Assembly: GCA_043228905.1 (NCBI GenBank)
Contig: JBHGNT010000021.1
Span: 8,928,001-8,992,000 of the forward strand
DNA: 64,000 bases
Direction: 5' to 3'
Origin: Azolla caroliniana
Taxonomy: Eukaryota > Plantae > Polypodiophyta
Shown here: piece after piece, positions 1,958 to 56,377 of the stretch
Position numbering within the stretch: position 1 is the stretch's first letter
How the letters are laid out: each line of letters opens with the position of its first letter
The notes under the pieces: model-generated
What the model was told of the DNA's origin: nothing
Databases searched by the model: none
What the model saw: only the letters and a program-made list of their open reading frames with translations
Translations under genes and position numbers: made by a program

Positions 1958-1969
1958 TGGTATCCGAGC
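1958..1969 (+). promoter_or_regulatory. Primer binding site, initiator tRNA-Met (1 mismatch)
   Basis: TGGTATCCGAGC versus canonical TGGTATCAGAGC, 2 nt after the LTR end. Confidence 0.85.
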
Positions 1970-2397
1970 TCATGTTCTAATGTTTCTTTTGTTATCTTTG
2001 GTGTTCTTGATTGATGGTGATCGATTGATGTGCGGTTGGCCTTGATCCAATTAACGATCAACAAAGAACTTCGGTAACTCTTTCCTTAATTTTTTTTTTC
2101 TATTTTTTCTTCTCCCATCTAATCATGTATATAGTCTATATGTAATTTTTTTCATTAATTCAATGATGTTGTAGTGGCAATTAATTGGTTGTATAAAATG
2201 TTTACATATGTGTATGAGGTTAATACCTCATTTGACATATATTGAATATGTGATTAATGTCATATGCGCACGAGGTTAATACCTCAATTGCATTTTACGC
2301 TCACATACATATGTTACGTTGTCGTAGTGTATTTCGTACACTACGTGAAAAAGTAAAAATAATATAACCGATTTAATTACATATAAATAAATAAAAT

Positions 2398-2493
2398 AAA
2401 AATATCAAGATATTTATCACGTGCATAGGGCAAGATTCGAACCCTGTACCTCCACGTAGCTAAACCTCAACTTTACCATTATGCTACCTTATC
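2398..2493 (-). promoter_or_regulatory. tRNA-type RNA polymerase III A-box/B-box module inside the element A LTR (second copy ~5315-5410)
   Basis: Minus strand TAGCATAATGG (2486-2476), GGTTCGAATC (2443-2434) at tRNA spacing, then a T5 run at 2402-2398. Confidence 0.6.
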
Positions 2494-3189
2494 TTTAGTG
2501 TTCTACAAATAGATTTAATAACTATAAGTGGTTTATTTGCACCTACCTTTATTAAAAGGTAAATCGTGCATTTTTAGAGTGCGTGAATATTTTATAGAAA
2601 AACGCAAGCAACTAAAAAGTGACTCATGCACATCTAGCGTGCATGAGCACTATATTTAGCAAATAAAAGCAAGGATTAGAAAAGCATCACATGCACATTT
2701 AGTGTGCATGAACATATTAGAAAAAAAAAGCATGTAGCTATGCTTAGTCTCTCCCATCACTACATAAGGATGGGGAGCACAATGTAATAGGGGTGTGAAA
2801 TATTTGGGAAATTGGATATATTTCCTAAAACACCAATTAATAAAATATACTCGTGGGATTCACGAAGTTTAAGATAATCTATCTCTTTCAATCTAAATTC
2901 ATATTCTTACATAAATATTGATTAATGTAATACTTGTGGGATTCACAAGGTTTGATCTCTTTTCTCAATCTACTCTAATCTATTCTAAATTATTTCAATT
3001 TATTACTACGATTTAGATAAACTAAAACAATTATACTTGTGGGATTCACAAGTTTCTATATCTCTTTCTTATAATCTATTCATATTCATAACTAGATTAG
3101 CCTCAAATTCTTCCTCCTCCTAGTCCAAAACCCCAGTGGTTCCCACCCGACTCACGCAAACGATCCGGAGCCGAAAGGCACGACACAGT

Positions 3190-3207
3190 TGGTGAACCCG
3201 ACGTGAA
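3190..3207 (+). promoter_or_regulatory. Primer binding site complementary to tRNA-Trp (same at 7102-7119 and 51268-51285)
   Basis: TGGTGAACCCGACGTGAA is the reverse complement of the plant cytosolic tRNA-Trp 3' end (...TTCACGTCGGGTTCA-CCA), recalled from memory. Confidence 0.85.
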
Positions 3208-3223
3208 GGCGGGTGGCAAGGAG

Positions 3224-5284
3224 ATGGAGAATCAACAAGAGGCAATGAGTATAACAATGATGATGATGTTCGAGCGGATGCTACAAGAACAACGAGTGAT
3301 GTCGGAGATCACGGGGGCAGTAAAGCGGCTCATATAACGAAACGGACAATTCAACGGAAACGATGTGTCACGCTATCTACGTGACTACAAGGCGGAGATG
3401 ATACGATGTGGGATATCGGAAGGATTGCAAGTGACATCCTTCAATCGGGTGGCCACGGATGAGCTACAAGAGAGAATCCACAAGATACAGCAACAAAACT
3501 CGACATGGGGGTCATTTGAAGAAGCTTTACGAGAGGCATATGATTACAAGAGATCAAAGGGACAAGATCGGCAAAAATTCGACGAATGGGTGGCATCGGA
3601 GAAGACCCACCGAAGTGCAACACAAGCATTCCTAGAGTTCGAGCATCGTCTTGCTCAACTCTCGGAGCGGGAACAACGATTGGTGGGAGAAGATAAAGTC
3701 CTAATGTTCGTAAGATCGATCGATCGAAAAGAAAGGATGGACATCGGGATCAAACTCGAAGACGATGACGGTACGAATGGTCTTACTGAAGATTGGGCCG
3801 AAGTCCAAAGGGTATGCCGGAGACATGATGAGAGGAAGATGAGAATCTTGTCAACGACATGGCCGATGAAGGATGGTCGATTGAAGACAAACGATGGAGC
3901 TGATATGAAGGCCGAAATACAACATGATGGTGCGACGGAAGAGGGTGTAAAACAAGCTACCCTCTTGTCTTGCGAAAGAACAACGACGAAGGATAAGGCC
4001 GATAACCCAAGTGTAGAAGAAGATTTCAGAATACAAGTGTCCGAAACATCGGGTGAAAAAGGGGTAAGCATAATTGATGCAGTGAAAGAGAGCAAAGAGG
4101 ACTTGATTGAGGAGGTCGCCACGAAAGATGACATCGAATCGAAGGTGGCTATGGACGAATCAATGATGGATGGCCATATCGAGACTTCCCCACCACTGAT
4201 TCTAGAGACTCCGGCGGTTGCGTTCGAAAGGCAACGTGAGACCGAAGAGACGGAAGGTGGCGGAGAGAAAACAAAGGTCGAAGCCGACGCGTATGACGGA
4301 GAGATAGCCAAGAATATGGCTATGGGTGAAACAATGGAGGATGATAATACCGAGGATTCCTACCCACTAATTCTAGAGACTTCGGCGGTTGTGTCCGAGA
4401 ACCAACGTGAGACCGGAGAGACGGGAGGTGGCAGCAAGAAAGGTAAAGTCGGAAGCCGGTTCGGATGGAAGGTGATCCGGACGGGATTCCGATCCGAAAG
4501 AAAGCCGAACCGGGTAAAAGAGGATTCGACCAAAAGTCGACCCAAAAGAAAGCCGAACCGAAAGGAAGAAAATTCAACCGAAAGACGACACAAACGAAAG
4601 CCGAACCGGGCAAATGAGGATTCAGCCGAAAGACGACCCGAAAGAAAGCCGACCCGAAAAAGGGTCGACTCGGTCAAAACCGATCGACCGAGTCTGACTT
4701 GGCAGAACGCGAATATGGATGGAAGCCGACCTAGCCGAAAGCCAATCGGACGAGACCGATCCGGAAAGAAGCTAATCCGACTCAATCGGAGGTTGGACCG
4801 GTCGAGGCTGGTGAAAACGAGGAAAAGAAAGCCAACCGAAACCGAAACCGATAGATCGAAACTGGGCCGGAAGGAGACCGACTCAATCGAAACCGAACAA
4901 CCGATTCCGATTTGGCCGAATACGAATCCGATCGGAAGCCGATCAAACCGAAAGATGATCGGACAAGAGCGATCCGGAAAAAAGTCAAGGTTGATGAAGA
5001 CAAGAAAGAGGCCAGTAAAAGACACTACCACGAATGACAAGGGCCAAGAATATGACGAGAGAGAACAAAGAATATGGTGGATCGGATGGCGACAATGGTT
5101 CGGGTGGAAAGAATGGGTCTACTCAAAATGGAGAGACAAAGTTGACATAGCGGGACAAACAGAGGATGAAGGGGAGACAACGAGCATCGGCAACTTCGGC
5201 ACATACCGGAGGATGTGCGGGTTCGGAGGGGGCGAGTGTCGTAGTGTATTTCGTACATTACGTGAAAAAGTAAAAATAATATAA
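3224..5284 (+). pseudogene. gag: Gag-like ORF of element A: capsid-like N-terminus, acidic region, Arg/Lys-rich region, Trp-rich tail; one premature TAA near 3335
   Basis: ATG at 3224 is in frame with track ORF 3365-5284; GQFNGNDVSRYLRDYKAEM...GLTEDW aligns with element B GRFDGKDATKYLASYGAEM...GLTTDW; the ORF runs into the 3' LTR. Confidence 0.8.
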
Positions 5285-7141
5285 CCGATTTAATTACATA
5301 TAAATAAATAAAATAAGAATATCAAGATATTTATCACGTGCATAGGGCAAGATTCGAACCCTGTACCTCCACGTAGCTAAACCTCAACTTTACCATTGTG
5401 CTACCTTATCTTTAGTGTTCTACAAATAGATTTAATAACTATAAGTGGTTTATTTGCACCTACCTTTATTAAAAGGTAAATCGTGCATTTTTAGAGTGCG
5501 TGAATATTTTATAGAAAAACGCAAGCAACTAAAAAGTGACTCATGCACATCTAGCGTGCATGAGCACTATATTTAGCAAATAAAAGCAAGGATTAGAAAA
5601 GCATCACATGCACATTTAGTGTGCATGAACATATTAGAAAAAAAAAGCATGTAGCTATGCTTAGTCTCTCCCATCACTACATAAGGATGGGGAGCACAAT
5701 GTAATAGGGGTGTGAAATATTTGGGAAATTGGATATATTTCCTAAAACACCAATTAATAAAATATACTCGTGGGATTCACGAAGTTTAAGATAATCTATC
5801 TCTTTCAATCTAAATTCATATTCTTACATAAATATTGATTAATGTAATACTTGTGGGATTCACAAGGTTTGATCTCTTTTCTCAATCTACTCTAATCTAT
5901 TCTAAATTATTTCAATTTATTACTACGATTTAGATAAACTAAAACAATTATACTTGTGGGATTCACAAGTTTCTATATCTCTTTCTTATAATCTATTCAT
6001 ATTCATAACTAGATTAGCCTCAAATTCTTCCTCCTCCTAGTCCAAAACCCCAGTGGTTCCCACCCGACTCACGCAAACGATCCGGAGCTGAAAGGCACGA
6101 CAACGTATGCATATGAGGTCAATACCTCGATTTCGTTGTAAATGATATGCGTAAGAGGTCAATACCTCAATTGCTTATCACGATGAACCCTTACTTTTGG
6201 ATGTTTTGTGTGCGTAGATGGTATATGCCTCGATTACGTATCTTGATTACATCATTTTTGGCTATTTGATGTAACGATTTGTTTAATGTACACATATGTG
6301 GTCACGTTGTCGTGAAGAAAACCGTCCATAGGCGGAATCGGCGCACCAAGGCGTGGGAACCGGTTCTTCACGCGCGCACGCTCCAAGTAGTACATAGAAG
6401 CGAATTAGGAGGATAATCGGCAGGAACGGGCCCTAACTCAAGTGGAGACAAAGACCGCGCGAACAGTCTTTTCGGTCGCGCGCGCGAACTGTACGAGTCG
6501 GCGGCGTAACTACGCGGATGCGTGGAAAAACGGAGCGGATCCCTGTCCAAAAGGGACAGGGAATAAAGCTGACAGGACGGCCTGCTCGTCGGCCTATATA
6601 AGGAGCGGGAAAGAGCTGTTGCAGAGATATCTCGCGCAGAGAGGACGAAGTGCTGCCGGACCGTTTCTGGACGCTTCGCTCTCTGTTTCCTTCCTTCTTG
6701 AGCTCCATAGCTTTCCGTGCAGGGTTCCGAGGAGGCTCGCGCTGTTTTCGAGGAACGCCCGAGTGCTTCCGGCAGCACCTCCGACCAGCTACAGCCCTTT
6801 GAGCGTCGAAGTGAACAGGCATCGGCATCTGTTCGCCGGCCTGTTCGGTCGTAACCAACCTGTGCCCCGTCGAGGGTTGTAGTCGTGTTAGCCGTTTTTC
6901 TTAATATACACATTTAGCCATTCGCATCTGTCTGTGTCGGTGTCTGTTCGTGTTCTCCGTGCTGAAGGGCCGTGTCCCTGTGTACCCCCGGTCCTGCGTA
7001 GCCGGTTCTCTCTCTTTCCCCCTCCCTCGCTTGCTCTTTGGTTCGAGACCCCCGCGGTCCCGCCTCGATTCCACACGCACTTGCATAATATCCCGACATC
7101 TTGGTGAACCCGACGTGAAAGAGGCGGCAGAAGAGCAGAAG

Positions 7142-9268
7142 ATGAGGGGGTCGGATCTCGCAGAGGCCATGGCTTCGGCCGTGGATCGGATTGTAAACGC
7201 GCGCGAGAGCACCGGTGCCCTCGACAGAGCTATTGAGGCGGTCGTCGGTACGATCGGCCGGTTCGATGGGAAGGATGCCACGAAGTATTTGGCGTCCTAC
7301 GGTGCAGAGATGCTGATGCGGGACATTCCGGAAGGAAGGCGTCTTGCCGGATTTCCCCGAGTGGCGATGCCGAGCATCCATGCGGAGGTGCTCGAGGTGC
7401 GGGCGGAGAGCCGTACCTGGGAGGAGTTCGAAGGTCGGCTCCTAGAGAAATACGGGCTGGACGACGCGCTCCGGCTTTCGAAGCGAAGGTTCATGGAATG
7501 GGTGGAGTCCCCGGGGAAGGGAAGAAACGCGTCGGCACTCCTCCGGGAGTTCGAGGAAAACTTTGCGCGCCTTTCGGCGCTCGACCGAACCATCCTGGAC
7601 ACGAGCCGGGTCTTGCTGTTTGTCAAGTCGGTCGACGAGCGGGATCGGGAGCAAGTGGGCCTCTTGCTGGAAACCGAAGACGGGCTCACTACCGACTGGG
7701 CGGCTGTCAAGAAGGTCTGTGGCCGTTTCGACAAACGGCGAGAATGGGCGGATAACGGGGTAACCGGGTCGGGCTCGGTCGCAGCAAGGAAGTTCGAACC
7801 AGCGCCACAGGTGCGAAAGGAAGAGACCCGAGAGTGGTTGGAAACCGGTTCGGCTTCGACCGGCGTAGTCAGAGGCTCAACCGGAGGAGCGGCGCTGGAG
7901 GAATTGACGAGGGCGGTAAAGGACCTCCAAATCGCGCAAGCCCGAAGGGAAGGTGGCGAACCGGCTCGTGACCGACGGCTGGCGGCAGGAAACAGGTGCA
8001 TGTGGTGCGATGAAGTCGGCCACATTCGGAAGGACTGCGGCGACTTCGCGGAGGCGCTGAGGGACAGGGTGGTGTACCTGTGGGAAGGACGGGTGCATGC
8101 CAGCGACACCCGAAGGACCCTGAGCCGAAACGTCGGAAAAGGTGGTATGAAAAGGTTGATGGAAGAGGCGGCGGCCCGACACGCGGAAACCGTCCACTAC
8201 TCGGCGTCGGCCGGCATTCGAGTCGGGGGCGGCGAGGCCCGAAGGGAAAGCAAAGCCGGATTCTGGCCGACGATGCTGGAAGGCCTTGCCGGTGCAAGGC
8301 TTAAAGGGGAGGAATCGGACCGTGCGGAGAAACGGGTACGGGAGATGACCGGGTGGAGCGACCCGGTCGAGGAACGGACGGGCTTCGTGGAAGCCGCTTG
8401 CCAGAACTACGAGGCTCTGGTAGAAGAGAAGCGGGTGGGGAAACCCGGGACGACCGGGCCCTCACAACGATACGAGACCCGGTCCGGGCCACGACGGGAC
8501 GAATCCGGCGGGGCCGGCACGCAAGATAAACCCCAGAAGGGCGGGTACCGTCTGGGGACGGAGATAGAAAGGACCACGGACTTACGGAAGGTTCTGGAGG
8601 AACGGATCCTCGACAGCAAGGTGGAGTTGTCGTTACGAGAGGTGCTGGGAATCGCCAAGAAGGAGTTCCACGACTCCATCGTGGACTTGGTGAAACGGAA
8701 GAGGCTGTCGACGGAGACAGAACCGGAAAGACCGGTGGAAGTGCGGACGACGCACCTAGACGACATGGCGCTGGGAGACGAGTGGGCGGAAAGCCACTAT
8801 TCGAGGCCACACTGGGCCCGAGCGACCACGGAAACCCCGGTGAAGATCGGCGATGTCCAGGAACCGGTGACAGCTTTGGTGGACCACGGATCGGAGATCA
8901 ATTTGATGTCCATGGACTTCTATAAGAAGGGCAAATGGCCGATCAACACCAAGCACGGGTGGAAAATAAGGGCAGCAACGCGCGCCACCGAGGAACTGCA
9001 CGGGGCCTGTCCGAATGTGCGAGTCAAGATTGGCGACGTCGAGATTGACCAGCACTTCTTCGTGCAGGAGACGTCTTCGCATCCAGTCATTCTGGGAGAG
9101 CCGTACATCACGGCGGCGCGAATGGAGACCAAAGTGCTGGACAATGGTTCGGCCTACGCGAGAGTCAAAAGCCAAGACGGGCGCCATTCGGTCCAGTTTC
9201 TGACGGTAAGGCCGAACCACGAACGTAACCGCGATTCCCTCGGTTCCGAAACCCGAGAGGATTTTTAG
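7142..9268 (+). CDS. gag: Gag-protease polyprotein of element B
   Basis: First ATG after the PBS; zinc knuckle CMWCDEVGHIRKDC; aspartic protease motifs ALVDHGSEINLM and VILGEPY. Confidence 0.92.
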   Translation: MRGSDLAEAMASAVDRIVNARESTGALDRAIEAVVGTIGRFDGKDATKYLASYGAEMLMRDIPEGRRLAGFPRVAMPSIHAEVLEVRAESRTWEEFEGRLLEKYGLDDALRLSKRRFMEWVESPGKGRNASALLREFEENFARLSALDRTILDTSRVLLFVKSVDERDREQVGLLLETEDGLTTDWAAVKKVCGRFDKRREWADNGVTGSGSVAARKFEPAPQVRKEETREWLETGSASTGVVRGSTGGAALEELTRAVKDLQIAQARREGGEPARDRRLAAGNRCMWCDEVGHIRKDCGDFAEALRDRVVYLWEGRVHASDTRRTLSRNVGKGGMKRLMEEAAARHAETVHYSASAGIRVGGGEARRESKAGFWPTMLEGLAGARLKGEESDRAEKRVREMTGWSDPVEERTGFVEAACQNYEALVEEKRVGKPGTTGPSQRYETRSGPRRDESGGAGTQDKPQKGGYRLGTEIERTTDLRKVLEERILDSKVELSLREVLGIAKKEFHDSIVDLVKRKRLSTETEPERPVEVRTTHLDDMALGDEWAESHYSRPHWARATTETPVKIGDVQEPVTALVDHGSEINLMSMDFYKKGKWPINTKHGWKIRAATRATEELHGACPNVRVKIGDVEIDQHFFVQETSSHPVILGEPYITAARMETKVLDNGSAYARVKSQDGRHSVQFLTVRPNHERNRDSLGSETREDF

Positions 9269-9324
9269 AGAGGACTGCCAAGGCGTGGGGCCGCGACAGT
9301 CCGGATGCTCCGGGAAAACCCCAC
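9259..9324 (+). promoter_or_regulatory. Predicted -1 ribosomal frameshift signal (slippery G_GAT_TTT plus H-type pseudoknot)
   Basis: Heptamer 9259-9265 directly before the ORF1 TAG; 6-nt spacer; stem 1 GGACTG 9272-9277/CAGTCC 9297-9302; stem 2 GTGGGG 9285-9290/CCCCAC 9319-9324; pol is in the -1 frame. Confidence 0.75.
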
Positions 9325-12300
9325 ATCTGTACGATAAAACCGTGTACAATAGGTAGGAAATTTTGCTTCTCCGACAGCGGAGCATGTACGATGGTCGGCA
9401 TCACCGGCCGAGAGAAAACAAAGACGGAGGGGAGACTTCGGGCGTGCGGAGTTCTCGGCTCTGACGAAGGAATCAACGGAGCCGTGGAGGCAGTCTCTTT
9501 CGACGACACCTTGGGAATGCTGGGGAAGGTAGTCGAAGAAGACCTTAACGAAGACCGGACGATACCGGTATGTTCCGAAGAAATGTACGAAGTCATCGCG
9601 GACTTCGGTCGAGGGCTCGAGTCGGAACGGACGGCCCGGGTGAGCACCAAGTACAAGACGGTGGACCGGAAGGTGAGGCCAGTTGCGGCGCCCTTACCGG
9701 AGGGCAGTGAATCCCGGATAAAAGGGGTTGCATCGGACCCCAGCTTACGAGATCGGGCCTGCATAGGACACACCTTCACCAACGAGACGCTCCGCGAGCT
9801 GAAGATCGGTGGGGGCGGGTTCCTACTGCCGGCGGAGGAAGACCGGTTCCGGAGAATGCTCGGAAGGCACGGGAAAGCCTTCGCATTCTCGCCGGAGGAA
9901 ATCGGGTGCGTGGACCCGACGATCGTAGAGCCGATGGTGATATTCACGGTACCGCATGTATCGTGGAATCTCAAGCCAATTTCGGTTCCGAGAGCTCACA
10001 TCCCGAAGTTGATGGAGCTGTTGAAGCAGAAAGTTGATATGGGCATTCTCGAGCCGTCGAGCGCCCCGTATTCAAACCGCTGGTTTACCGTACCAAAGAA
10101 AAACGGATCATTGCGCTTCATTCAGGACCTGCAGCCGGTCAATAGAGTGACCATTCGGAACGCGGGGATCGGACCGACCATAGACGAGTTCGCGGAGGCC
10201 TTCGCCGGAAGGTCGATTTACTCGGTCGGTGATCTATACTCAGGGTATGACCAGTTCCAGCTAGCCGTGGAGAGCAGAGACATTACGACGATGCGAACTC
10301 CCCTCGGCCTAGTGCGGATGTGTACGCTGCCGCAAGGAGGGACCAACTCGGTGGCCCACATGGTGAATGCGATGAACAAGGTGCTGAGGGACTGCATCCC
10401 GAACATCACCATGCCGTTTCTAGACGACATCCCGATCAAGGGATGCCCGGTAGAAGAGAAGGACGAGACGATCGGGCCGGACGGATGCCGGCGATTCGTG
10501 ACGGCGCACATCGACGACTGCGAGAAGGTGCTGCAAAGGCTAGAGGAGGCGAGGCTCACCTTCTCGGGGGAGAAATCAGCCTTCGGGCAGTCGGAAATCA
10601 TGGTGGTCGGACACTTATGTGGGCCATATGGCCGGAAACCGTCTCCGGCAAAGGTAGAAGCCATCTCCGCGATGAAGCCCGACTGCAGCTCGGTCACGGA
10701 AGTGCGAAGATTCCTGGGGGCATGCGCATTCTACCACATATGGATCCCGCATTACGCCCACGTTGCGGAGCCGCTATACGGATTACTGAGGAAAGGGCAA
10801 AGATTCGAATGGCTAGACAAGCACACGGAGTCGGTCCGGAAGCTGAAGGAGGCTCTTTCGGCAGCACCGGCGCTCCGAAAGGCCGTCTACAGGAAGGGCA
10901 CCCCAGTGTACATAACGGTTGACACGAGTCCGACCGGAATCGGGTGGGTCGTCAACCAAGAAGACGAGGACGGCAATCGGTTCCCGATCCGATTCGGTGC
11001 GAAGGTCCTCAGCGAACGGCAGCGAGGATACGCCCAGGTTAAACGCGAACTCTGGGGTATCGTTTCGGCGGTGAAGGCCGACAAGGACTATCTGATCGGG
11101 ACGGAGGTAATCATAGAGACGGATTGCATGCCGATTCTCGGCATGATTTCCGGATGCGCGACGCCGGACCTGGCAATGCTCAGGTGGATAGCGTATATCA
11201 AGTCCCTAGACCCGGTAATACGACACATTTCCGGGAAAGACAACGCCATGGCCGACATGCTTTCAAGGGCGAGATTCGATGACGAGGGCGGCATGGTTTC
11301 GGAGGACGAAGACGTCGGCGTGGACTTCTTCGAGACTGCGTATGTAACAACAGACGGAACAAGCACTCCGGCGCTTAACGACTTCGACGCGAGCAAGTAC
11401 GACGGGGAGTGGCTGCAGATCGGTGGGTTTCTGAAGACAATGACGCCCGATGCGTCATGGACGAAGGACGAGGCCGACCGGATCCGGAAGAAAGCGTACC
11501 GGTTCTTTCTCCGGGATAGCTGTCTATGGAAGCACCCGAAGAAGAAGGACGGCGTTCCGCTCCGGGTGGTGGCGATGAAGGAAGAACAGGAGGAGCTGCT
11601 GACGGCCTACCACGACAGCCCTTGGGCTGGACACCGTGGAACATGGGCTACGTTTGAGAAACTGAAGGGGAAGTATTGGTGGCCGGGGCAGTACCAGGAC
11701 GTGCATCGGTTCGTGACAACTTGCGAGAGCTGTCAGATGCACTCCACAGTCCGACATCGGGACGAGCTTCACCCCACGTACCCTCCGACCATCCACTTCA
11801 AATGGATGGTAGATCTGGTGACGATGCCAATGGGAGTAGGACAGATGCGGTACCTGGTCCTAGCGCGGGAGGATCTGACGAACCAGGTGGAAGGCCGGGC
11901 CCTTCCGAACAAAACAACCGCGGCCGTATGCCGGTTCCTAGTCGAGGACGTGATATGCCGGTATGGGTGCGTCGGAAAGATCGTGGCTGACCGAGGGGAG
12001 TTGGACGCCGAAGAAGCCGCGGAGCTGTTCGACCGGCTGGGAGTCAAGCTCTCGCTCACCACTGCGTACAATCCGGAGGCGAATGGAAAGGTGGAGCGCG
12101 GACACGGACCGATCGTCAAGGCGTTGGTTCGGGCATGCAGAGGCCGAGTCGGTAACTGGCCGCGGCTGCTACCTTATGCTTTGTGGGCGGACCGGACCAC
12201 GCACAGTTCGGTAACCGGGTACATGCCGACGGAGCTCATGTTCGGCCAGAAGCCGATCATGCCGATGGAACGGACGATCTCCTCGTGGGCAACGGTCGAC

Positions 12301-12747
12301 TGGAGGGACGAGATGAGCCGGGAGGAGTTGTTGGCCGCGCGCATACGACAGCTCGAGCGGAGACCGGAGGACGTGGAACTGGCTGCGGAGAAGCTCCGAG
12401 TGGCGAGGAGAAAGAACAAAGCCAGGTTCGACCGAACGCACCGGCTCCGACCGAAGAAAATCGAAGAAGGTGACTGGGTGCTCGTCTACGATAGCAGCCT
12501 CGACAACCAGCACCGAGCTACACGGAAGTTCGCACGAAGGTGGTTCGGGCCTTACGTGGTACGGAGCGCCAATGACAACGGGACATACCACCTGGCGGAA
12601 CTCGACGGCACGAGAATGACGATACCGGTTGCAGGGAAACGGATCAAAGCGTTCAAGAAGCGACACGACGACGAGCCAGACCCGGCTCTCCTGGTCGGCA
12701 GTGACGAACGATCCGAAAACGAGGAAGAACCGACGGGCGAGGAATGA
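9265..12747 (+). CDS. pol: Pol (RT, RNase H, integrase) of element B, in the -1 frame relative to ORF1
   Basis: Frame open from 9229; RT DLYSGYDQ, LPQGGTNS, PFLDD; RNase H VDTSPTGIG; integrase H..GH..CESC, MVDLV/ADRGE/VERGH and a GPY module; no chromodomain. Confidence 0.95.
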   Translation, partial: LERTAKAWGRDSPDAPGKPHICTIKPCTIGRKFCFSDSGACTMVGITGREKTKTEGRLRACGVLGSDEGINGAVEAVSFDDTLGMLGKVVEEDLNEDRTIPVCSEEMYEVIADFGRGLESERTARVSTKYKTVDRKVRPVAAPLPEGSESRIKGVASDPSLRDRACIGHTFTNETLRELKIGGGGFLLPAEEDRFRRMLGRHGKAFAFSPEEIGCVDPTIVEPMVIFTVPHVSWNLKPISVPRAHIPKLMELLKQKVDMGILEPSSAPYSNRWFTVPKKNGSLRFIQDLQPVNRVTIRNAGIGPTIDEFAEAFAGRSIYSVGDLYSGYDQFQLAVESRDITTMRTPLGLVRMCTLPQGGTNSVAHMVNAMNKVLRDCIPNITMPFLDDIPIKGCPVEEKDETIGPDGCRRFVTAHIDDCEKVLQRLEEARLTFSGEKSAFGQSEIMVVGHLCGPYGRKPSPAKVEAISAMKPDCSSVTEVRRFLGACAFYHIWIPHYAHVAEPLYGLLRKGQRFEWLDKHTESVRKLKEALSAAPALRKAVYRKGTPVYITVDTSPTGIGWVVNQEDEDGNRFPIRFGAKVLSERQRGYAQVKRELWGIVSAVKADKDYLIGTEVIIETDCMPILGMISGCATPDLAMLRWIAYIKSLDPVIRHISGKDNAMADMLSRARFDDEGGMVSEDEDVGVDFFETAYVTTDGTSTPALNDFDASKYDGEWLQIGGFLKTMTPDASWTKDEADRIRKKAYRFFLRDSCLWKHPKKKDGVPLRVVAMKEEQEELLTAYHDSPWAGHRGTWATFEKLKGKYWWPGQYQDVHRFVTTCESCQMHSTVRHRDELHPTYPPTIHFKWMVDLVTMPMGVGQMRYLVLAREDLTNQVEGRALPNKTTAAVCRFLVEDVICRYGCVGKIVADRGELDAEEAAELFDRLGVKLSLTTAYNPEANGKVERGHGPIVKALVRACRGRVGNWPRLLPYALWADRTTHSSVTGYMPTELMFGQKPIMPMERTISSWATVDWRDEMSREELLAARIRQLERRPEDVELAAEKLRVARRKNKARFDRTHRLRPKKIEEGDWVLVYDSSLDNQHRATRKFARRWFGPYVVRSANDNGTYHLAELDGTRMTIPVAGKRIKAFKKRHDDEPDPALLVGSDERSENEEEPTGEE

Positions 12748-14033
12748 AGACGGGCCGGTTTTCTCCGTCCCAACTCTCTTGGCGCATACCGGAGGATGCG
12801 CGGTTAGGTGGGGGCGGATGTCGTGAAGAAAACCGTCCATAGGCGGAATCGGCGCACCAAGGCGTGGGAACCGGTTCTTCACGCGCGCACGCTCCAAGTA
12901 GTACATAGAAGCGAATTAGGAGGATAATCGGCAGGAACGGGCCCTAACTCAAGTGGAGACAAAGACCGCGCGAACAGTCTTTTCGGTCGCGCGCGCGAAC
13001 TGTACGAGTCGGCGGCGTAACTACGCGGATGCGTGGAAAAACGGAGCGGATCCCTGTCCAAAAGGGACAGGGAATAAAGCTGACAGGACGGCTTGCTCGT
13101 CGGCCTATATAAGGAGCGGGAAAGAGCTGTTGCAGAGATATCTCGCGCAGAGAGGACGAAGTGCTGCCGGACCGTTTCTGGACGCTTCGCTCTCTGTTTC
13201 CTTCCTTCTTGAGCTCCATAGCTTTCCGTGCAGGGTTCCGAGGAGGCTCGCGCTGTTTTCGAGGAACGCCCGAGTGCTTCCGGCAGCACCTCCGACCAGC
13301 TACAGCCCTTTGAGCGTCGAAGTGAACAGGCATCGACATCTGTTCGCCGGCCTGTTCGGTCGTAACCAACCTGTGCCCCGTCGAGGGTTGTAGTCGTGTT
13401 AGCCGTTTTTCTTAATATACACATTTAGCCATTCGCATCTGTCTGTGTCGGTGTCTGTTCGTGTTCTCCGTGCTGAAGGGCCGTGTCCCTGTGTACCCCC
13501 GGTCCTGCGTAGCCGGTTCTCTCTCTTTCCCCCTCCCTCGCTTGCTCTTTGGTTCGAGACCCCCGCGGTCCCGCCTCGATTCCACACGCACTTGCATAAT
13601 ATCCCGACAACGTGTATACATATTTGATCGTATATATGTGATAAGTAAACATACATGTATATTTGATATTACGTGCTTTCTATCGAATGTTTTCCTTGTC
13701 GGGAAAAGGATCTTGGTGGCTGTCCTCACATTTTTGTGAGAATGGCGTTTTCACCATCCCTTTTTCAACAATTTTTTGTTGACATCCCCGTTGGTCACTT
13801 TGATATTTCGTTACGTAATGAAACAATCATAGACACAATGGTGTTGAGTACGTAGGGTTTAACCCACTTCATGTGAGGTCGCTCCTATGACACACATATC
13901 CACCATCCCTCCCTCATTACATGGATATGATGCCACCATGAGATCATTCTTACAAAAGGCATTCGTAATAACGTAACCATGTGATGGGCCACGTGGGCCT
14001 ATTACGAAAAGAGGCCTCATTTGGCTTGACCAT

Positions 14034-15130
14034 TGTGAAAGTGTTTTTAGAATTCAAGGTATTGAAGTCTATAAGAATATAAGGTATGGTGCGTTCACAT
14101 CCGGAAGGCAAGATCACGAGCTAAGGTCTTGAGGATAAGTCAAACAAAAAGCAAGTCACGTGGAGAAAAGTAAAAGAAGAAAAAAGCGGGCACCAAAATG
14201 CAGTCTACAACGAACACTCATAACTCATTCGTTTGGAAGCCAAATATAATGTGTAAATATGGATTAGAAAGCTTATGACGAGAGCTATCCGTAGCTTTTT
14301 AAAACTCTAAATTTGGAGCATGGATGAGGGAGATATGACGATTAGAAGATCATTGTGTCATAGCTAAGAATAGGAGATGGAAAAGCTGTAAAAAAAGCGT
14401 GGAAAAGAAAGCAAGCGAAACTTATCTACTAGAGGAGAACTTCATATAAAGCAAGAAGAGTGAGGTGGTGAGGAGGAGCCTTTTTCTGGTGGGGTTTTTC
14501 TTGCCTATTCATGTAGTGCGTTTTTTCTAGTGATCAATTCATCCTTGTAGGCTTGAATTAATAAGGAGTGATGATCATAGAAACAAGAGAAAGAAGATAC
14601 ATAAACTCAAGCCTACAAGGATGAATTGATCACTAGAAAAAACGCACTACATGAATAGGCAAGAAAAACCCCACCAGAAAAAGGCTCCTCCTCACCACCT
14701 CACTCTTCTTGCTTTATATGAAGTTCTCCTCTAGTAGATAAGTTTCGCTTGCTTTCTTTTCCACGCTTTTTTTTACAGCTTTTCCATCTCCTATTCTTAG
14801 CTATGACACAACGATCTTCTAATCGTCATATCTCCCTCATCCATGCTCCAAATTTAGAGCTTTAAAAACCTACGGATAGCTCTCTTCACAAACTTTCCAA
14901 CCCATATTTACACATTATATTTGGCTTCCAAACGAATGAGTTATGAGCGTTCGTTGTAGACTGCATTTTGGTGCCCGCTTTTTTCTTCTTTTACTTTTCT
15001 CCACGTGACTTGCTTTTTGTTTGACTTATCCTCAAGACCTTAGCTCGTGATCTTGCCTTCCGGATGTGAACGCACCATACCTTATATTCTTGTAGACTTC
15101 AATACCTTGAATTCTAAAAACACTTTCACA
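14034..15130. repeat. Long inverted repeat, arms 14034-14556 and 14607-15130, 50-bp spacer
   Basis: TGTGAAAGTGTTTTTAGAATTC...GTAGGCTTGA is the reverse complement of TCAAGCCTAC...GAATTCTAAAAACACTTTCACA. Confidence 0.95.
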
Positions 15131-15388
15131 TTTAGCCCTCCCCCTTGCTTTTTTGTGAACCATTTATGGTGAACCCTAAGCTACTAATAAAACTAAAGGT
15201 TCTCCTTCGCCTTATTCATGGCTATAGACAAAGAAGGAGAAGATAAATAGAAAAGAAACAAACTATGTGAGTAAAACCCCCGCTAGTCGATAGGAAAAAC
15301 CTCACACTTCTAAACACACACACATACACATTGACAATTGCCATCACCATCTTTCTCCTTGTCAACACAAAGAAAGAGGTTACAACAA

Positions 15389-36745: not shown

Positions 36746-36759
36746 AAAGAGGGGGAGTA

Positions 36760-38153: not shown

Positions 38154-38203
38154 ACGGACTAAGGGATGGCTCTTCGACTCACTAGTGACCCCTTCCCTCA
38201 TGT

Positions 38204-47100: not shown

Positions 47101-48474
47101 GATGAAGGTAGTGACAGTACGAGAGCCGGAAACCTTTTCGGAAGCTGCAAAGGACCCACGATGGATCGAAGCAATGAACGAGGAGATGCAGGCACTACGG
47201 AAGAACGAGACGTGGGATCTCGTTCCCACCTCACCACACAAAAAGGCGATTGGATGCAGATGGATCTACAAGGTGAAGTATAACGCCGATGGCTCCATAA
47301 ACCGCTACAAAGCTCGACTCATAGTGAAAGGATACGCTCAGACGCATGGCGTCGACTACGCAGAGACCTTTGCCTCGGTGGCAAAGATGACGACGATGCG
47401 AACCGTAATTGCGATTGCCGCGGCGAAAGGGTGGCACCTCCATCAAATGGACATCAAGAACGCCTTTCTACAAGGCGAATTAGAAGAGGAGGTGTACATG
47501 ATCTAACCACCCGGTTTCAACTCGAGCACCCATCCGAAAGCTGTTTGCCAACTCAAGAAGCCACTCTACGGCCTCAAGCAAGCACCGCATGCTTGGCATT
47601 CGAAGATAACGCAATATCTTCATCAAATCGGCTTCCGTATGTCAAAATCGGACAACTCCCTCTACATACGAAGCGATTCCGCAAGTCCGATCGTCATCAT
47701 CTTATATCTGGATGACCTAGTCATTGGAGGTGAGCATCTCATCGAAATCAATAAAGTCAAATCCCTCCTTTCCAACAAGTTCGAGATGACGGACATGAAG
47801 GAGCTCCACTACTTCCTCGGCATCGAGGTAATTCGGACTCCGGCCGGAATCATGATCTCTCAACGGCACTACATCCTCAACTTGTTATACAAGTTCGGGA
47901 TGGCTGAGTGCAAATCCATGGCAACCCCGCTCGATCGTAATCTCAAACTAGATGCACACTCCGGCACCAAAGCGTGTGAGCCGACTCAGTATTGGCACCT
48001 CATCGGGAGTCTCATCTACCTCACGATCACATGACCCAATCTCAGTTATCCGGTCGGTCTCCTTAGGGAATTCATGCAAACACCGCGTGATACTCGCTTG
48101 GATTGCGCTAAGCGAGTTCTACGATATGTGAGTGGCACAATGGATTGTGGCATCCTCTACAAGACCGCGATGCCAATACGACTCGAGGGGTACACGGACA
48201 CCGATTGGGCCGGCTACAAAGCCGATAGATGATCAACCTCCGGATTTGTTTTCTCCCTCGGCAGCGGAGCAATATCCTGGAGTAGAAAGAAGCAACCTAC
48301 CATCGCTCTTTCGAGTATGGAGGCGGAATACAGGGGCGCAGCCGTAGCTGCGTGTGAAGCCGTATGGCTCAAGAGGATTTTGAAGGATCTGGGCGTACCC
48401 ATCAAGGATCCGACTTCCCTTTATTGTGACAACATCAGCAGTATCTATCTGGCTCGGAACTCTGTGTTCCACGC
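44183..48474 (+). mobile_element. Element H: decayed, truncated Ty1/copia of a different lineage
   Basis: LTR stub ending TTACA then PBS 44196-44207; KLDRNNFASWEYKM, CGYCGKLGHHEEEC, WFVDSGASNHM, VHSDVWGP, YLDD; cut within RNase H (..SVFHA) by the next insertion. Confidence 0.9.
45224..45362 (+). repeat. In-frame tandem repeat between gag and protease of element H
   Basis: YAHNSD(YED)RGGM unit x4. Confidence 0.85.
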
Positions 48475-49846
48475 TGTCGTGCCTTTTGGCGCCAGATCGT
48501 TTGTGTGAGTCGGTGGGAACCACTGGGGTTATGAACTAGGAAGAGGAAGAATTTGAGGCGATTTTAATTATGTATATATTATTAGAAGCTTGTGAATCCC
48601 ACAAGTAGAGTTGTTTTAGTTTGTCTTAATCATAGTAATAAATTGAAATAGTTTAGAATAGTTTAGAGTAGAAATAGAAAAGAGATCAAACCTTGTGAAT
48701 CCCACAAGTATTACATTAATCAATATTTATGTAAGAATATGAATTTAGATTGAAAGAGATAGATTATATAAAACTTCGTGAATCCCACGATTATATTAAT
48801 TGGTGTTTTAGGAAATATATCCAATTTCCCAAATATTTTTCACACACCCATTACATTGTGCTCCTCATCCTTATATAGAGATGAGAGAGTCTTTTCTAAC
48901 CCATGCATTTTCTCTAATTATAGACTCCGTGCTTTTCCTATAGATAGACTATATGCTTTATCTAAAGTGATTATGCTTTTTCTAACTTGTGCGTTTTTTT
49001 ATCAACTATAGCGTTCATGCACGCTAGATGTGCATGCGTAGCTTTTTCTTTTAGCATGCGTTTTTCTTTTAACTAAAGTTTATCCTACGTGAACTTACCT
49101 TTTTTTATGTGGGACATCAACTTTTTAACACGAATGAAATGCTAGTGTAATGGTAAGACATTACATTATTAACATGGAGGTGCAAGGTTTGAATCTTGCC
49201 CTATGCATGTTATATATATTTTAATATTTTCTACTATTTATTCATATTTATTAAACCGGTACTTTATAAGTTTTTCACGTAGTGTACAAAATACACTGTG
49301 ACACTCGCCCCCTCCGAACCCGCACATCCTCCGGTATATGCCGAAGTTGTCGGTGATTGTTAGTCTCGTCTGTTTGTTCTCCGCATGGTTGGTTTTGTCG
49401 CCGGTCATTTTTGGTTGCCGGCTCCGATCAGTTTCCGGTTCAGTTCGGTTGCCGGCTCTATCCGGTCTCTGGTTACCGGCCCTCGTAATTCTTCGTTACT
49501 TGTTCTACCCTCCGTTTCTCTCGCTATGTCAGCTTTGTTTCTCCATTTTGAGCACATCCATTCTTTCCACCCGAACCATTGTCGCCATCCGATCCACCAT
49601 AGTCTTCGTTCATTCTTTGCATTGCCATGAGTGGTTGTCATGGTCCCTTGTGGTCCTCTTGAGCATCTCGGCGTGTTGTCTCTCTCTGCTCCGCGCTTGT
49701 CTTCCGTAGGTTCTAACGCGTCGATGTCAACCTTCGAATATGCGCTCGTTGTTAGGTCCTTGTGTGGCTTTAATGCATGTTTCATTTCTCGTTGTTGCGC
49801 ATGCGTCGTATTACGCCGTAGCGCATGCTTCGCATTCCATCGTAGT
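48475..49846 (-). mobile_element. Truncated A-family element: 3' LTR (48475-49303), PPT and ORF tail
   Basis: Reverse complement of the A LTR (diverged); PPT 49304-49315; ORF 49405-49785 has LWWIGWRQWFGWKEW; flank ACGC at 48471-48474. Confidence 0.9.
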
Positions 49847-51061
49847 GCAATTTCGTTTTGGCCTAGGATATTCCCTAGGATGACCAGGCACTAATGGAGC
49901 AATTTCGTTTTGGCCTACGTAATGATGTTAAAGATTTACTCTTAACTTTCCCTGAGGAGCCAAAGTCATTGACAAAAGCAATTAGTGGTGCGGTGCGATG
50001 CGATAATCGCCTCTCCGAACGACGTTCGGAACGTCAGTTCCAAATGCCAATGACAAGATCGGAGCTGACCTACGCTTTAATCGTAGCAAAGCCTTTCCCA
50101 AGGGAGTAATTCAATACGTCTCCAACAAATACTCTGACTCCAATGGAAATCGACACCACATGTCGTCACGGACCACTATCAGAAGAAGAAAAGCAGCGAC
50201 GCGGAGCAAAATCGATTATGCCTTTATTGTGGTGGACCAGGGCATATTGCAATGAATTGCCCCCATTGGCTGAAAAGGCAGGTAAATCAAATAACCAGTA
50301 GTACTAATAGTACTAAACTGAGTCTATTTCTCTAGGTGTGTCTGATAGTCCTAATAGCCCAAGACTTTCAAACAAATTTGAAATCCTTAGTCAACCACAA
50401 GAAGAGTTAAACAATTAAGTCCAGCCAAAATAGGAGTCGTTTGGTTGGATAGCCCTAGATCTGTGCAACCCATTAGTGGTTCCATTTCCTCTAAGCAAGT
50501 TAGCAATGTGTTCTTAGCTCAAGTAATGGTTAGTACTAAAAGTACTCCTCCAGTACATGTCTTAGCACTCTTAGATTTTGGAGCCAACTCTTGCTTCATG
50601 GATAGGAATTTTGTCCAAGCTCATCAAATATCCCTAAACAAAGTCACATGTCCAGCCTCTGTAGTAGTCATTGATGGTCGTCCTATTGCTTTTGGAAATA
50701 TTATAGAAGAGTCAAAACCCGTTAATATTGTCCTAGATAACTTAGAATGTGTAGTATCATTTAATATAATTCGTATCCCAGAACATCCCATAGATTTTGG
50801 GATTACCATGGTTCGAATTACATAACCCAACGATAGATTTGAGAACAAGAGAAATACGGTGTCGACAAACCCAAGGATCTACTCATAAGATTGCAACCAT
50901 TTCGCTACATCAGTTGCGTGAGGATGGATGCAAGGAAGAAATGTTTCCCTTCACAATATCAGTAAACCCCTCCAACATCAATAAAGAGGAGTCCACCATT
51001 CAACTTCCAGAGAAGTATCGTCATTATGCCGATGTGTTTGATAAAGTACGAGCCAGTACGC

Positions 51062-54000
51062 TGTCGCGAAAATACGACGAGGATACGTGAACTTGAGGCA
51101 GGACCCCGGGGCCTCCGACCAGAGAATATCAAATTCGTGTGTTTATGTACTAAGAATTAACCGAAATAAGAAAGATTGACAAATTTCATTAACAAATAGA
51201 AAGAAAGATTACAATTAATCCCAATCTCTCAAGTTCACGTATCCTCGTCATATTTTCGCGACATCTTTGGTGAACCCGACGTGAAATGAGGCGGCAGGAG
51301 GATATTTCATGGAGATATATAAATACAAAGAGCCGAAGAGATGCAGCCTATACGAGTTCGACTAATGGGTATCATCATTAAAGACCCACCAAAGTGCCAT
51401 GCATGCTTTCGTTGAGTTCGAGTGTCGCTTTGCACAACTCTCGGAGCGGGATCAAAGATTGGTGGGGGTGGAAAAATTCCTAATGTTTGTGAAGTCAATC
51501 GATCAGAAGGAAAGGAAGGCCATTGGAATCCGACTTGAGGATGATGATGGTGCAAATGGCCTCACCGAGGATTGGATGAAAGTGGAAAGAGTATGTCAAC
51601 TGAACGATAAGAGGAAGACAAGATTCTCATCGGCAACAACACAACCCATGATAGATGGTGAAAGGAGGATGGGAAGCAACTACAAACTACCACCTAAAGA
51701 AGAGAGCTTGAAAAGGGAAGGTTCGATGGTACTCGACATAGAGGCCTTCATAAACGAGGCATATGAGAATTTAAAGGTGCAAGTTGAGGCCAAAGAGAAT
51801 CTTATAATGGAACCAAAACCGATTAAAATGGTTATCAAGGAAGAAGAGACCTCCCAACAAAGGTGGAGTAATGATACGGCCAATACGAAGGCCCAAGTTC
51901 GGTACGACAACACCACGGAAGAAGGTGTGGAATAAGACACCTTCTCGTCTTGCAAAGAAACTATGATGAAGAATGAAACCAATGAATCGAGGGTGGCGAA
52001 TGCCACTTCAAGTGAGGACAAATGTTTCGGAACACGCATCGTGTCTGAAACATCAAGTGATGAAGGTGCAAGCATGAGCAAAGCTTGCATGATCAAGGGA
52101 GATAAAAAGTGTGAGGCCGACATGATTGAGGAGATAGCCACAAAAAATGACATCGAGTCAGAGGTGGCTATGGACGAGTCAATGGCGGATGGCCGTTTCG
52201 AGACTTTCTCCACACTTGTTCTAGAGACTTGGGCAGATGCGTTAGAAAACAAATGTGAGACCCAAGAGACAGAAGGTGGCGGCGAGGAAGTGGAGGCCGA
52301 AGCTAACACATGCGAAGAAGAAAGAGACGTCAAGGCGAAGCGGGTAGACAACGATCATGAAGAGACTTTCCCCACAAAAGTTCTTGAGACTTGGGCATTA
52401 ACTGATGTAAGACCCAAGAGACAGAAGGTGGTGGAAAAAAGACAAAGATCAAAGCCAAGCAAACAACCACAAGGTGGAAGTGGCTAAAGGTAGCACGACA
52501 AAGGCAATGCCAAACAACAAAATTCCTCCACACTCGTTTGAGAGACTTGAGCAGTAATTGATGTAAGACCCAAGCAAAGGACGGTGGCGGCGAGGAAGCA
52601 AGGGTTAAAGCCAATGTGCGTAACAAGGATGTAAAGCAAAGCAAAATGACGAAAGTCCATGCGTGCGACAAAGAGGTCAAGCAAAGCACGAAGACAAAAG
52701 CTAATGTGTGTGACAAAGAGACCAAGCAAACCTCAAAAAGCAAAGATATGGACCAAGTGGGCCAAGCGGATATGAAAGATGTGATCACAAAATCTAACAA
52801 GGATAATACTAGTGTAGAAGTCATAGTCAACTCCAAGACGAGAGTATACCACAAAAGTGGACAAAGTGGGAAGCATGCGATGTGGTCACTTAAGGACCTA
52901 GAGGAGAGCATGCCGCTAAAGAACAAATCGTTAAGAGTACTCAAGAATACTATTTCGATAAGGCCTTTGAAAGGCATGCATGGAACAAGAAAGAATGATA
53001 AAAGAAAATTAGATGACCAAGGAGATGGCCGAGATGAAGGTGGCACATGCATAAGGAGTGAAGCATTATGCTCTAGAGGAGCAAAGAGAGCCATGACAAT
53101 TGGTCATGGAAATGCAAAGAGTGGATGAAGAATATGGTGGATTTGATGCCAATGGCAATTCGAGTACATCGATGGAAAAGTATAGTAAACAAAAGTGGAG
53201 CCTCACTGAAATTGGCACATATCGGTGGATGTGCAGGTTTGGTGGGAGCGAATGTCGTGTGAATCTTCACACACTATGTAAAAAAATAATGAAATAATTA
53301 TTTTAGATCAGATTATTAGCTTGTTATAGAAAGATGGATGTACTCAAGAACTTCAAAACGCATTTTACTACATACAAAATGGACAACTACATATCAAGTT
53401 ATGAGAACATGAAGTTTGAGAAGATAGAGAAAATAGAACTATGATTTATCCCACATAGATAGGAAACTTAAGGCCCTAGCTATATAAGCACATTGAGATC
53501 CCTCACTTTTCATTTGTGCCAAGAGCACTTTGGCCACTTTGTCTAGATGGATGAATGTGCCCAAGTTACCAAAAAAGCAAACCAGAACCGGCCGGTAATC
53601 AAATCGAAACTTGCGAAACTGGCAATCGGATGGAGTCAGAAACCAGGTAGATCCGGCAATCGGAAATCGGTGACCGGACGGAACCGACGACTGGACGAGG
53701 TTGGATGCGGACTAGATGGACCGGATGGGCGATGATCGAGACGGACGGATTGGATGGGCGACGATCGAGACAGACGGATGATATGATCATGTGGCAAATT
53801 AAAGTAAAGTAAAAGAGACTAAAGTAAAGGCCACGTGGATGCATGCAACTAAAGTTGGAGGGCATGCATAAAGTAAAGATCATATGGAAGGCATGAAAAG
53901 AAAAAGTGGAGAGATTATGCAACTAAAGTAAAAACGCCATGTGGAATGCATGCAAAGGGATAGGAGATGTAAACTGAAGTTCCTTCATGCAAGTGTATGG

Positions 54001-55506
54001 GTGAGAGACAAAAAGGAAGAATCCGAATTTTCTTAGGGGACCTATCACTCATAATTCCAAAATTTCCATATGGAAGTTATTCAACTCATAAACCATAATC
54101 TCTTATCAAAGCCAAAAAACCCTAATTTTCTTTTGAATCCATATCTCAAATTCTTCTAATCTATTATTCTAGTAATCTCCATAAGCTAAAACTTTTGTAA
54201 TCCCAATCTTGGGATTGATTGTAATCTTTCTTTTCCTTTGTTAATGAAATTTGTCAATCTTTCTTATTTCGGTTAATTCTTAGTACATAAACACACGAAT
54301 TTGATATTCTCTGGTCGGAGGCCCCGGGGTCCTGCCTCAAGTTCACGTATCCTTGTCGTATTTTAGCAATATCTTTTAATACGACGAGGATACGTGAACT
54401 TGAGGCAGGACCCCGGGGCCTCCGACCAGAGAATATCAAATTCGTGTGTTTATGTACTAAGAATTAACCGAAATAAAAAAGATTGACAAATTTCATTAAT
54501 AAATAGAAAGAAAGATTACAATTAATCCCAAGATTGGGATTAGAAAAAGTTTAGCTAATGAAGATTGCTAGAGTAATAGATTAGAAGAATTTGAGATATG
54601 GATTCAAAAGAAAATTAGGGTTTTTTGGCTTTGATAAGAGATTATAGTTTATGAGTTGAATAACTTCCGTATGGAAAATTTGGAATTATGAGTGATAGAT
54701 CCCCTAAGAAAATTTGAATTCTTCCTTTTTGTCTCTCACCCATACACTTGCATGAAGGAACTTCAGTTTGCATCTCCCCATCCCTTTGCATGCGTTCCAC
54801 ATGGCGTTTTTACTTTAGTTGCATGATCTCTCCACTTTTTCTTTTCATGCCTTCCATATGATCTTTACTTTATGCATGCCTTCCAACTTTAGTTGCATGC
54901 GTCCACATGGCCTTTACTTTAGTCTCTTTTACTTTAATTTGTCACATGATCCTATCATCCGTCCATCTCGATCGTCGCCCATCCAATCCGTCTGTCTCGA
55001 TCACCGCCCATCCAATCCGCGTCCAACCTTGTTCGATCGCCGGTTCCACCTGATCACCGATTCCGTAAAGTCATCGGTTGCCGGATTCACCCAATTTCCA
55101 ACTCCATCCGATTGTTGGTTTCACCAGTTCTGATTTGATTACCAACCGGTTCCGGTTTAGTTTCCGACCGGTTCCGGTTTGGTTTTTTGGTAAGTTGGCC
55201 ACATTCATCCATCTAGACAAAGTGGCTAAAGTGCTCTTGGCACAAATGAAAAATGAGGGATCTCAATGTGCTTATATAGCTAGGGCCTTAAGTTTCCTAT
55301 CTATGTGGGATAAATCATAGTTCTATTTTCTCTTTCTTCTCAAACTTCATGTTCTCATAACTTGATATGTAGTTGTCCATTTTGTATGTAGTAAAATGCG
55401 TTTTGAAGTTCTTGAGTACATCCATCTTTCTATAATAAGCTACTAATCTAATCTACAATAATTATTTCATTATTTTTTTACACAGTGTGTGAAGATTCAC
55501 ACGACA
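51062..55506. mobile_element. Element I: rearranged gag-only element of the Trp-primed lineage
   Basis: Outer termini belong to a minus-strand LTR with TSD ACGC (51058-51061, 55507-55510); inside, plus-strand U5 stub (~51229-51263), PBS 51268, decayed A-like ORF, PPT and LTR 53253-54371. Confidence 0.88.
53253..55506. repeat. Long inverted repeat, arms 53253-54362 and 54378-55506, 15-bp spacer
   Basis: TGTCGTGTGAATCTTCACACACT.. versus ..AGTGTGTGAAGATTCACACGACA; the arms align throughout with substitutions and indels. Confidence 0.95.
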
Positions 55507-56377
55507 ACGCTTCCTCACCATCGATCGTATGATTGCCCCATCGATTTACAACTAGGAAAAGAGACACCATGGGGAACGATCTACAATTTGTCACTAACCG
55601 AGCTAGAAGTCCTTGGAGCCTATATAGAGGAGAATTTGGCAAATGGTTTCATTCGACATTCGAAATCTCTAGCCGACGCACCCATTTTCTTCGTCAAGAA
55701 AAAGGATGGATCACTTCATCTTGTTGTAGATTACCGCGGATTGAATAAAGTAACCATCAGGAATAGGTATGCACTTCCCCTTATCTCAAGTCTTTTAGAA
55801 CGGATCAATGGTGCAAGGTTCTTCACAAAGATCAACTTACAAGGAGCATATAACCTCGTATGGATCCAACCAAGATATGAATGGAAGACTACGTTTCGCA
55901 CCAGATATGGGCACTTCGAGTATACGGTCAAGCCATTCGGCTTCACTGATGCGCCATCAGTCTTCCAACACATGTTAAATGATATATTTTGAGATCTCTT
56001 GGATGATTTTTTAATCATCTATTTGGATGATGTGCTAGTTTATTCGAAGACCCAAGAGGAGCATGATTCTCATGTACTGTTAGTACTAAAATGACTTCGA
56101 GAACATGGTCTTTATGCAAAGCTGGAAAAATGTAGTTTCAGGTGCAACTACGTAGAATTTTTGGGCTATTTCATTTCCTCAGAAGGTATCTCCATGGATC
56201 CAGCTAAGGTCAAAATGGTGGTAGAGTGGCAGACTCCGCGTTCGTTGCGAGATGTGCAATGTTTTGTAGGCTTTGTCAATTTTCACCGCAAGTTCATATA
56301 GGATTACTCAAAGCTTGTTCTACCTCTCACACAACTTACCAGGAAGGGACAATCATTCGTTTGGTCTAAAGAAATGG

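Follow-up and report, generated by a model that had tools for sequence, protein, structure and literature searches.

What decides, to the base pair, where a long terminal repeat (LTR) retrotransposon enters plant DNA? The question is raised by a 64,000-nucleotide stretch of the Azolla caroliniana genome (assembly GCA_043228905.1, contig JBHGNT010000021.1, positions 8,928,001 to 8,992,000 of the forward strand; hereafter the window), the whole of which was found by self-comparison and boundary reading to be made of nested transposable elements (TEs). A first-pass annotation had picked out five insertions with LTRs that start with TGTC and end with GACA, and had placed them at CpG-centred sites. 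All five are indeed there, all five have CpG-centred flanks, and four of them are bounded by exact 4-bp target site duplications (TSDs; ACGT, ACGT, ACGG and ACGC). The conserved CA-3' LTR termini are joined at a stagger of 4 bp, with CG as the two central target bases. We think it probable that these insertions belong to a non-chromovirus Ty3/gypsy lineage of the Phygy type, whose integrase chooses CpG-centred targets with a 4-bp stagger. The insertions of the lineage in the window, with their primer binding sites (PBS), polypurine tracts (PPT) and open reading frames (ORFs), are as follows.

2316 to 6106, plus strand: element A, non-autonomous and gag-only, with LTRs at 2320-3185 and 5237-6102 that are 99.5% identical
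3190 (PBS) and 3365-5284 (ORF), plus strand: internal parts of element A, from LTR-pair and boundary reading
2316-2319 and 6103-6106, plus strand: TSD of element A, ACGT, from flank reading
6304 to 13613, plus strand: element B, autonomous, with LTRs at 6308-7098 and 12819-13609 that are 99.7% identical
6304-6307 and 13610-13613, plus strand: TSD of element B, ACGT, from flank reading
37434-38153 (37430 to 38157 with TSD), plus strand: solo LTR with TGTC..GACA ends and ACGG on both sides
48471 to 49611, minus strand: truncated copy of the A family, with a 3' LTR at 48475-49303, a PPT before the LTR and an internal remnant to about 49611
51062-55506 (51058 to 55510 with TSD), no single strand: element I, a rearranged foldback with ACGC on both sides
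1 to 578, minus strand: additional LTR of the lineage, to the left of the range first listed, with its U3 start at 574 and the flank CCGT on the plus strand (ACGG in element orientation)
584 to 1311, minus strand: second, older LTR fragment, which ends at 1307 and has the flank ATGG on the plus strand (CCAT in element orientation)

Judging from their sequences, A, B, I, the copy at 48475 and the solo LTR are members of one Ty3/gypsy lineage. B is its autonomous member, on which the gag-only or rearranged copies (A, I and the one at 48475) depend. Element A is 3783 bp long, and the N-terminus of its single long ORF is 36% identical to the gag of B (E = 2e-28). The solo LTR resembles the 3' LTR of metagenome contig L008, which lies behind a PPT typical of the lineage and is flanked by ACGT. 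The 48475 copy has a single flank, ACGC on the plus strand and thus GCGT in element orientation. Element I begins with an inverted 163-bp U5 piece, followed by a forward U5, a Trp-type PBS at 51268 and a gag remnant; then a forward LTR that starts at 53253, behind a degenerate PPT, abuts an inverted LTR that runs to 55506, so that 53240-55520 forms a palindrome with 89% identical arms. Given the clean ACGC/ACGC duplication around the whole, what was integrated seems to have been an aberrant cDNA whose two ends were both of the LTR type. The LTR and PBS region of I is 85-90% identical to metagenome contigs L033, L035 and L015; the latter two encode Pol and L033 its C-terminal part, about 70% identical to B Pol. 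The fragment at 584-1307 has the only non-CpG flank of the lineage within the window. On its two sides (575-583 and 1308-1311) stand ATGT and ATGG, with TG where CG would be expected, and these may be a TSD in which the CpGs have decayed on both sides.

Two observations bear on whether the 4-bp duplication is real. The bases inside the LTR junctions (cagt/cgag in A, tctt/cgga in B) differ from ACGT, and ACGT is therefore target duplication and not LTR sequence. In addition, Logan contigs from four public runs were placed on window positions 1800-6400, and each of the runs has contigs that pass from 2315 straight to 6103 and so lack 3787 bases (the 3783 bp of element A plus 4), with four letters shared; this joint is the unoccupied target of A with a single ACGT. 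The flanks of A are highly repeated in the four runs according to the depth table, and the empty-site contigs may represent paralogous copies instead of alleles; the boundaries and the 4-bp length are fixed either way. We note that over 1800-6400 the window has A where the contigs have G at about 40 places and T where they have C at about 29, with the reverse directions at 10-17 places, an excess of G-to-A and C-to-T changes in the window copy as expected of deamination in methylated repeats.

NCGN makes up 5.25% of the 4-mers of the window, and at this background five CpG-centred sites out of the five listed have a probability of ~4e-7. Beyond the window, the census of target sites drew on ten Riccia sorocarpa loci, one long ENA contig and 80 metagenome contigs. 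Relatives of B Pol are present in the chromosome-scale assembly of the liverwort R. sorocarpa (gag-pol 57-63% identical) and, at up to 95% identity, in one series of ENA metagenome assemblies; a search with B gag gave unnamed metagenome proteins and one Riccia protein, and no Physcomitrella patens protein is named among the matches listed for the B proteins. LTR ends were located by LTR pairs, PBS and PPT, and the flanks themselves were not used. The LTR match in L003 is only 122 bp long, and its 5' flank alone was counted. L008 and L021 were excluded as insertion flanks because their LTR end is followed directly by a PBS, which indicates a collapsed or tandem assembly; at L008:978, L008:7496 and L021:6371 the PBS recurs after the end of the LTR, as in a tandem or circularly collapsed assembly and not an insertion junction.

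NCGN stands at 30/33 flanks, and the probability of at least 30/33 at the background frequency is ~1e-35, so the contention that CpG-centred 4-bp targeting lies far above chance is upheld. All 14 complete flank pairs are exact 4-bp NCGN duplications. Nine complete R. sorocarpa insertions have the 4-bp TSDs ACGA, ACGC, ACGT (three times), ACGG and CCGG (three times), and a solo LTR in L004 has ACGC. Over the 33 sites, TSD position 1 is A in 20, C in 10, G in 2 and T in 1; position 2 is always C (33/33); position 3 is G in 30/33; and position 4 is T in 15, G in 9, C in 8 and A in 1. The consensus is thus close to M-C-G-K. Among individual forms ACGT leads (10/33), and CCGG, ACGC and ACGG are also common. 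The strict palindrome YACGTR, which the first-pass annotation had favoured, was rejected as the consensus, since only the central C and G are near-invariant. Its outer bases fared unequally: a pyrimidine at -1 is weakly favoured (20/28, p = 0.036 uncorrected), and a purine at +1 (12/19) is not significant. The asymmetry between A at position 1 (20/33) and T at position 4 (15/33) is not significant enough to claim. Elements of the window outside the lineage serve as controls; of the 5-bp TSDs without CpG that had been ascribed to them, GATAA, GTATC and CATGT were verified and GATAC was not located in the window.

The coding content and priming of B place the lineage among known groups. Its parts are:

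6950-9268, plus strand: gag-protease ORF of B, from ORF reading
9391-12747, plus strand: reverse transcriptase (RT)-RNaseH-integrase ORF of B, from Pfam
7102, 3 nt past the 5' LTR, plus strand: PBS of B, TGGTGAACCCGACGTGAA, from boundary reading
ending at 12818, plus strand: PPT of B, from boundary reading

The two ORFs lie in different frames about 120 nt apart (9268 to 9391). B Pol contains the Pfam domains RVT_1 (residues 234-408), RT_RNaseH (474-603), Integrase_H2C2 (730-785) and rve (804-895). Pfam finds no chromodomain in it at E <= 0.01, and the ORF stops about 55 residues beyond a GPY/F-type motif. Nor is there at E <= 0.01 any match to RVT_3 (the archaeal-type RNase H, aRH) or to RNase_H; this absence is meaningful because the Tat-like element at 27100-34064 of the same window, the positive control, gives a strong RVT_3 match (E = 1.9e-25). 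In the sense direction the interior of B has just two long ORFs, with no third ORF there and none between the end of pol at 12747 and the 3' LTR at 12819. The gags of B and of the Riccia elements match DUF4100 (PF13352), a repeat domain from Physcomitrella patens (Hori et al.).

The PBS TGGTGAACCCGACGTGAA lies 3-4 nt past the LTR in A, B and I, and is presumably of the tRNA-Trp type, an assignment based on the 3' end of plant tRNA-Trp and on the first-pass annotation. The same type is found at 26 places (24 loci) among the metagenome relatives and in most Riccia copies. The description of one Ty3/gypsy lineage with a tRNA-Trp-type PBS and no chromodomain is supported. No tRNA gene that would back the assignment was found in the window or the ten loci, and a text search with the 3'-terminal 12-mer of the PBS-complementary sequence shows only that it recurs in plant small-RNA papers. 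A second PBS type, TGGTGCTTCCACTGAGAG, occurs in four relatives. L004 (447-470), L086, L088 and L090 (Riccia) have this other PBS in the form TGGTGCTTCCACT(A/G)AGAG, yet the same TGTC..GACA ends and NCGN TSDs; it may be the tRNA-Thr type that is listed for 6% of Phygy elements, and primer switching has left the target rule unchanged.

Phygy is a non-chromovirus Ty3/gypsy lineage described from Physcomitrella patens, in which 186 elements have a 4-bp TSD in 100% of cases with the motif NCGN (Neumann et al. 2019, PMC6317226, Additional file 5). Its PBS is of the tRNA-Trp type in 81% and of the tRNA-Thr type in 6%, it has no extra domains, and its elements are 7656-9968 bp long (PMC6317226). Jedlicka et al. 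2019 (PMC6911290) also found mostly 4-bp TSDs in Phygy, and report that, when families are pooled, the centre of a 4-bp TSD is a GC-rich dinucleotide between AT-rich neighbours. Since then, elements classed as Phygy have been annotated in the genome of a liverwort. The window lineage has the same 4-bp TSD, NCGN target and Trp-type PBS; B has the same domain order, RT-RNaseH-integrase after gag-protease, is compact with coding sequence filling its interior, and is without chromodomain, aRH or extra ORF; and both groups have a minority second PBS type, tRNA-Thr in the published set and TGGTGCTTCCACTGAGAG here. From these diagnostic traits and the DUF4100 link we infer that the B lineage is Phygy in the REXdb sense. 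It differs from published Phygy in that its host is evidently not P. patens, as the weak DUF4100 match also suggests, that its closest named relatives are those of Riccia liverworts, at about 60% identity, that the motif can be given more closely as about M-C-G-K, T being very rare at position 1 and A at position 4, and that gag-only non-autonomous derivatives (A and I) use the same target. The first-pass suggestion of an undescribed plant targeting mode cannot be kept, since the NCGN preference with 4-bp TSD was already published for Phygy, the very result that the annotation had named as removing its novelty. The lineage is a further case of published Phygy targeting, a confirmation and modest extension and not a new mode.

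Other lineages were considered and rejected. TatI of REXdb also has a 4-bp TSD and a tRNA-Trp PBS (PMC6317226, Additional file 5), but aRH is present in 100% of its elements and B has none at the threshold given above. Selgy has a tRNA-Ala PBS and an element of about 5 kb, against the Trp-type PBS and 7.3 kb of B. The chromoviruses (Tekay, CRM, Reina, Galadriel and Tcn1) have a chromodomain, mostly a tRNA-Met PBS or self-priming, and mostly 5-bp TSDs. An errantivirus-like gypsy element of the ZAM type would be expected to have a third, env-like ORF, and there is none between B pol and the 3' LTR.

Several points weigh against a Phygy-type lineage with an integrase-set target. Phygy membership is drawn from diagnostic traits and from the DUF4100 link, and the DUF4100 match of B gag is weak, at 29.8 bits where the cut-off is 27.9. 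B itself, at 7302 bp, is about 350 bp shorter than the published Phygy range, and its Riccia relatives measure 8.7-9.9 kb. Nineteen of the 33 sites are single-flanked and their TSD length is assumed. Three of the 33 flanks, CCAT, CCAG and CCTT, are not NCGN. CCAT and CCAG are each one G-to-A transition away from NCGN, as decay of methylated CpG would give, and CCAT, the flank of the window fragment that ends at 1307, may be such a decayed CpG; CCTT comes from contig L051, which has 1.6x coverage and an inverted pol fragment abutting the LTR, and this site may be chimeric. Finally, dependence on a cofactor or on methylation would look the same at these sites as an intrinsic preference.

Recognition at the level of the integrase, as first proposed, is the most economical explanation and the most likely mechanism. 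In such a mechanism the integrase would attach the two LTR termini (CA-3') to target DNA across a stagger of 4 bp and would strongly prefer targets with CpG as the two central bases, and the preference would be intrinsic to the intasome. The target DNA would be kinked at the central pyrimidine-purine step of the 4-bp stagger, as in retroviral intasomes, CpG being such a step; a strict choice of CG over TA or CA would imply additional symmetric base contacts. For a CG-containing target chosen by the integrase itself, the best parallel in mechanism is offered by the Drosophila gypsy group, whose elements likewise have 4-bp TSDs and palindromic targets, with the clade-specific motifs ATAT, TATA and TRYA (Linheiro and Bergman 2012, PMC3276498), and by ZAM, whose integrase binds directly to CGCGCg, the target of that element (Faye et al. 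2008, PMC2527525). These are insect elements of other clades, many of them with env, whereas B has no env-like third ORF; most of their motifs are rich in AT, and the CG repeat that ZAM requires is longer. Retroviral target choice combines a flexible central pyrimidine-purine step with contacts by specific integrase residues (Serrao et al. 2015, PMC4422553). The 4-bp-stagger intasomes of retroviruses (prototype foamy virus) resemble the present case in a weakly palindromic target, a central flexible Y/R step and integrase contacts, and differ in that their preference is weak and takes any Y/R step, against a CG centre at about 90% of the sites here.

The alternative that survives best is that the integrase, or a partner protein, recognises CpG that is methylated symmetrically, and in this way directs insertions to silenced DNA rich in TEs. 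Every target in the window lies within TE sequence, the flanks of A are highly repeated as described above, and the exceptions CCAT and CCAG (two of the three) differ from NCGN by a transition of the deamination type. Set against this, ordinary genes (VPS28, ribosomal S12/S23, a tRNA synthetase and TFIIB) are found no more than a few kb from several of the Riccia insertions, which implies that targeting is not confined to repeat deserts, and a sequence preference for CG requires no methyl group. We consider a methylation-reading mechanism unlikely. Considerably less probable still is that a host bZIP/bHLH factor bound to ACGT cores tethers the integrase, as the first-pass annotation had raised as possible, with the G-box (CACGTG) in which B lies and the A-box (TACGTA) in which A lies: CCGG, CCGC, ACGC, ACGG and GCGG targets have no ACGT core, ACGT itself makes up 10/33 TSDs, the five complete ACGT sites include only one G-box and one A-box, and known tethers bias insertion towards regions and do not set it, to the base pair, relative to the scissile bonds. 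It is hardly credible that the pattern stems from chance, from LTR boundaries wrongly called, or from random integration followed by biased survival. Although only five to seven sites make up the window sample and metagenome contigs can be chimeric, as the exceptional L051 may show at its low coverage, the probabilities given above are minute, LTR-LTR comparison and the empty site of A fix the boundaries, a single-base register is beyond what selection can produce, and the independent published set of 186 elements agrees (PMC6317226).

The remainder of the window includes other elements, of which the Tat-type one supplied the aRH control:

27100-34064, minus strand: intact gypsy element of the Tat type, with a polyprotein of 1728 aa containing RVT_3, LTRs that are 99.7% identical and the 5-bp TSD GTATC

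LTR-like repeats are also present at 14557-15130 and 17229-17799, together with an inverted copy at 14034-14562 that makes a 1.1-kb palindrome; the LTR-like repeats within 14034-17799 are 75% related to Tat-type LTRs and have no evident TSD. A copia element at 20696-26896 has 40-bp tandem repeats in both LTRs (20656-20911 and 26133-26468), in differing copy number, and a 54-bp tandem array in its interior (22399-22668).

For annotation, the finding means that LTR finders that demand 5-bp TSDs will miss this lineage or set its bounds wrongly. How an LTR integrase reaches a choice of about 90% for one dinucleotide has no explanation in the literature searched. What the present analysis adds to the published account is conservation in liverwort relatives, gag-only dependants that obey the rule, the narrowing of NCGN to about MCGK, and the empty-site evidence. 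The combination of NCGN target, 4-bp TSD and Trp-type PBS is not peculiar to Physcomitrella, but extends to the genome of the window, to R. sorocarpa and to metagenome relatives, down to 57% Pol identity. It is conceivable, though doubtful, that CpG-centred 4-bp integration is an ancient trait of one integrase clade, common to mosses and liverworts and predating their split, and that it operates by direct symmetric reading of CpG, possibly in its methylated form. If that were true, base-specific and possibly epigenetic recognition of the target would be seen for the first time in a plant LTR integrase, and, in the case that methylated CpG is read, the elements would be targeting themselves to silenced DNA.

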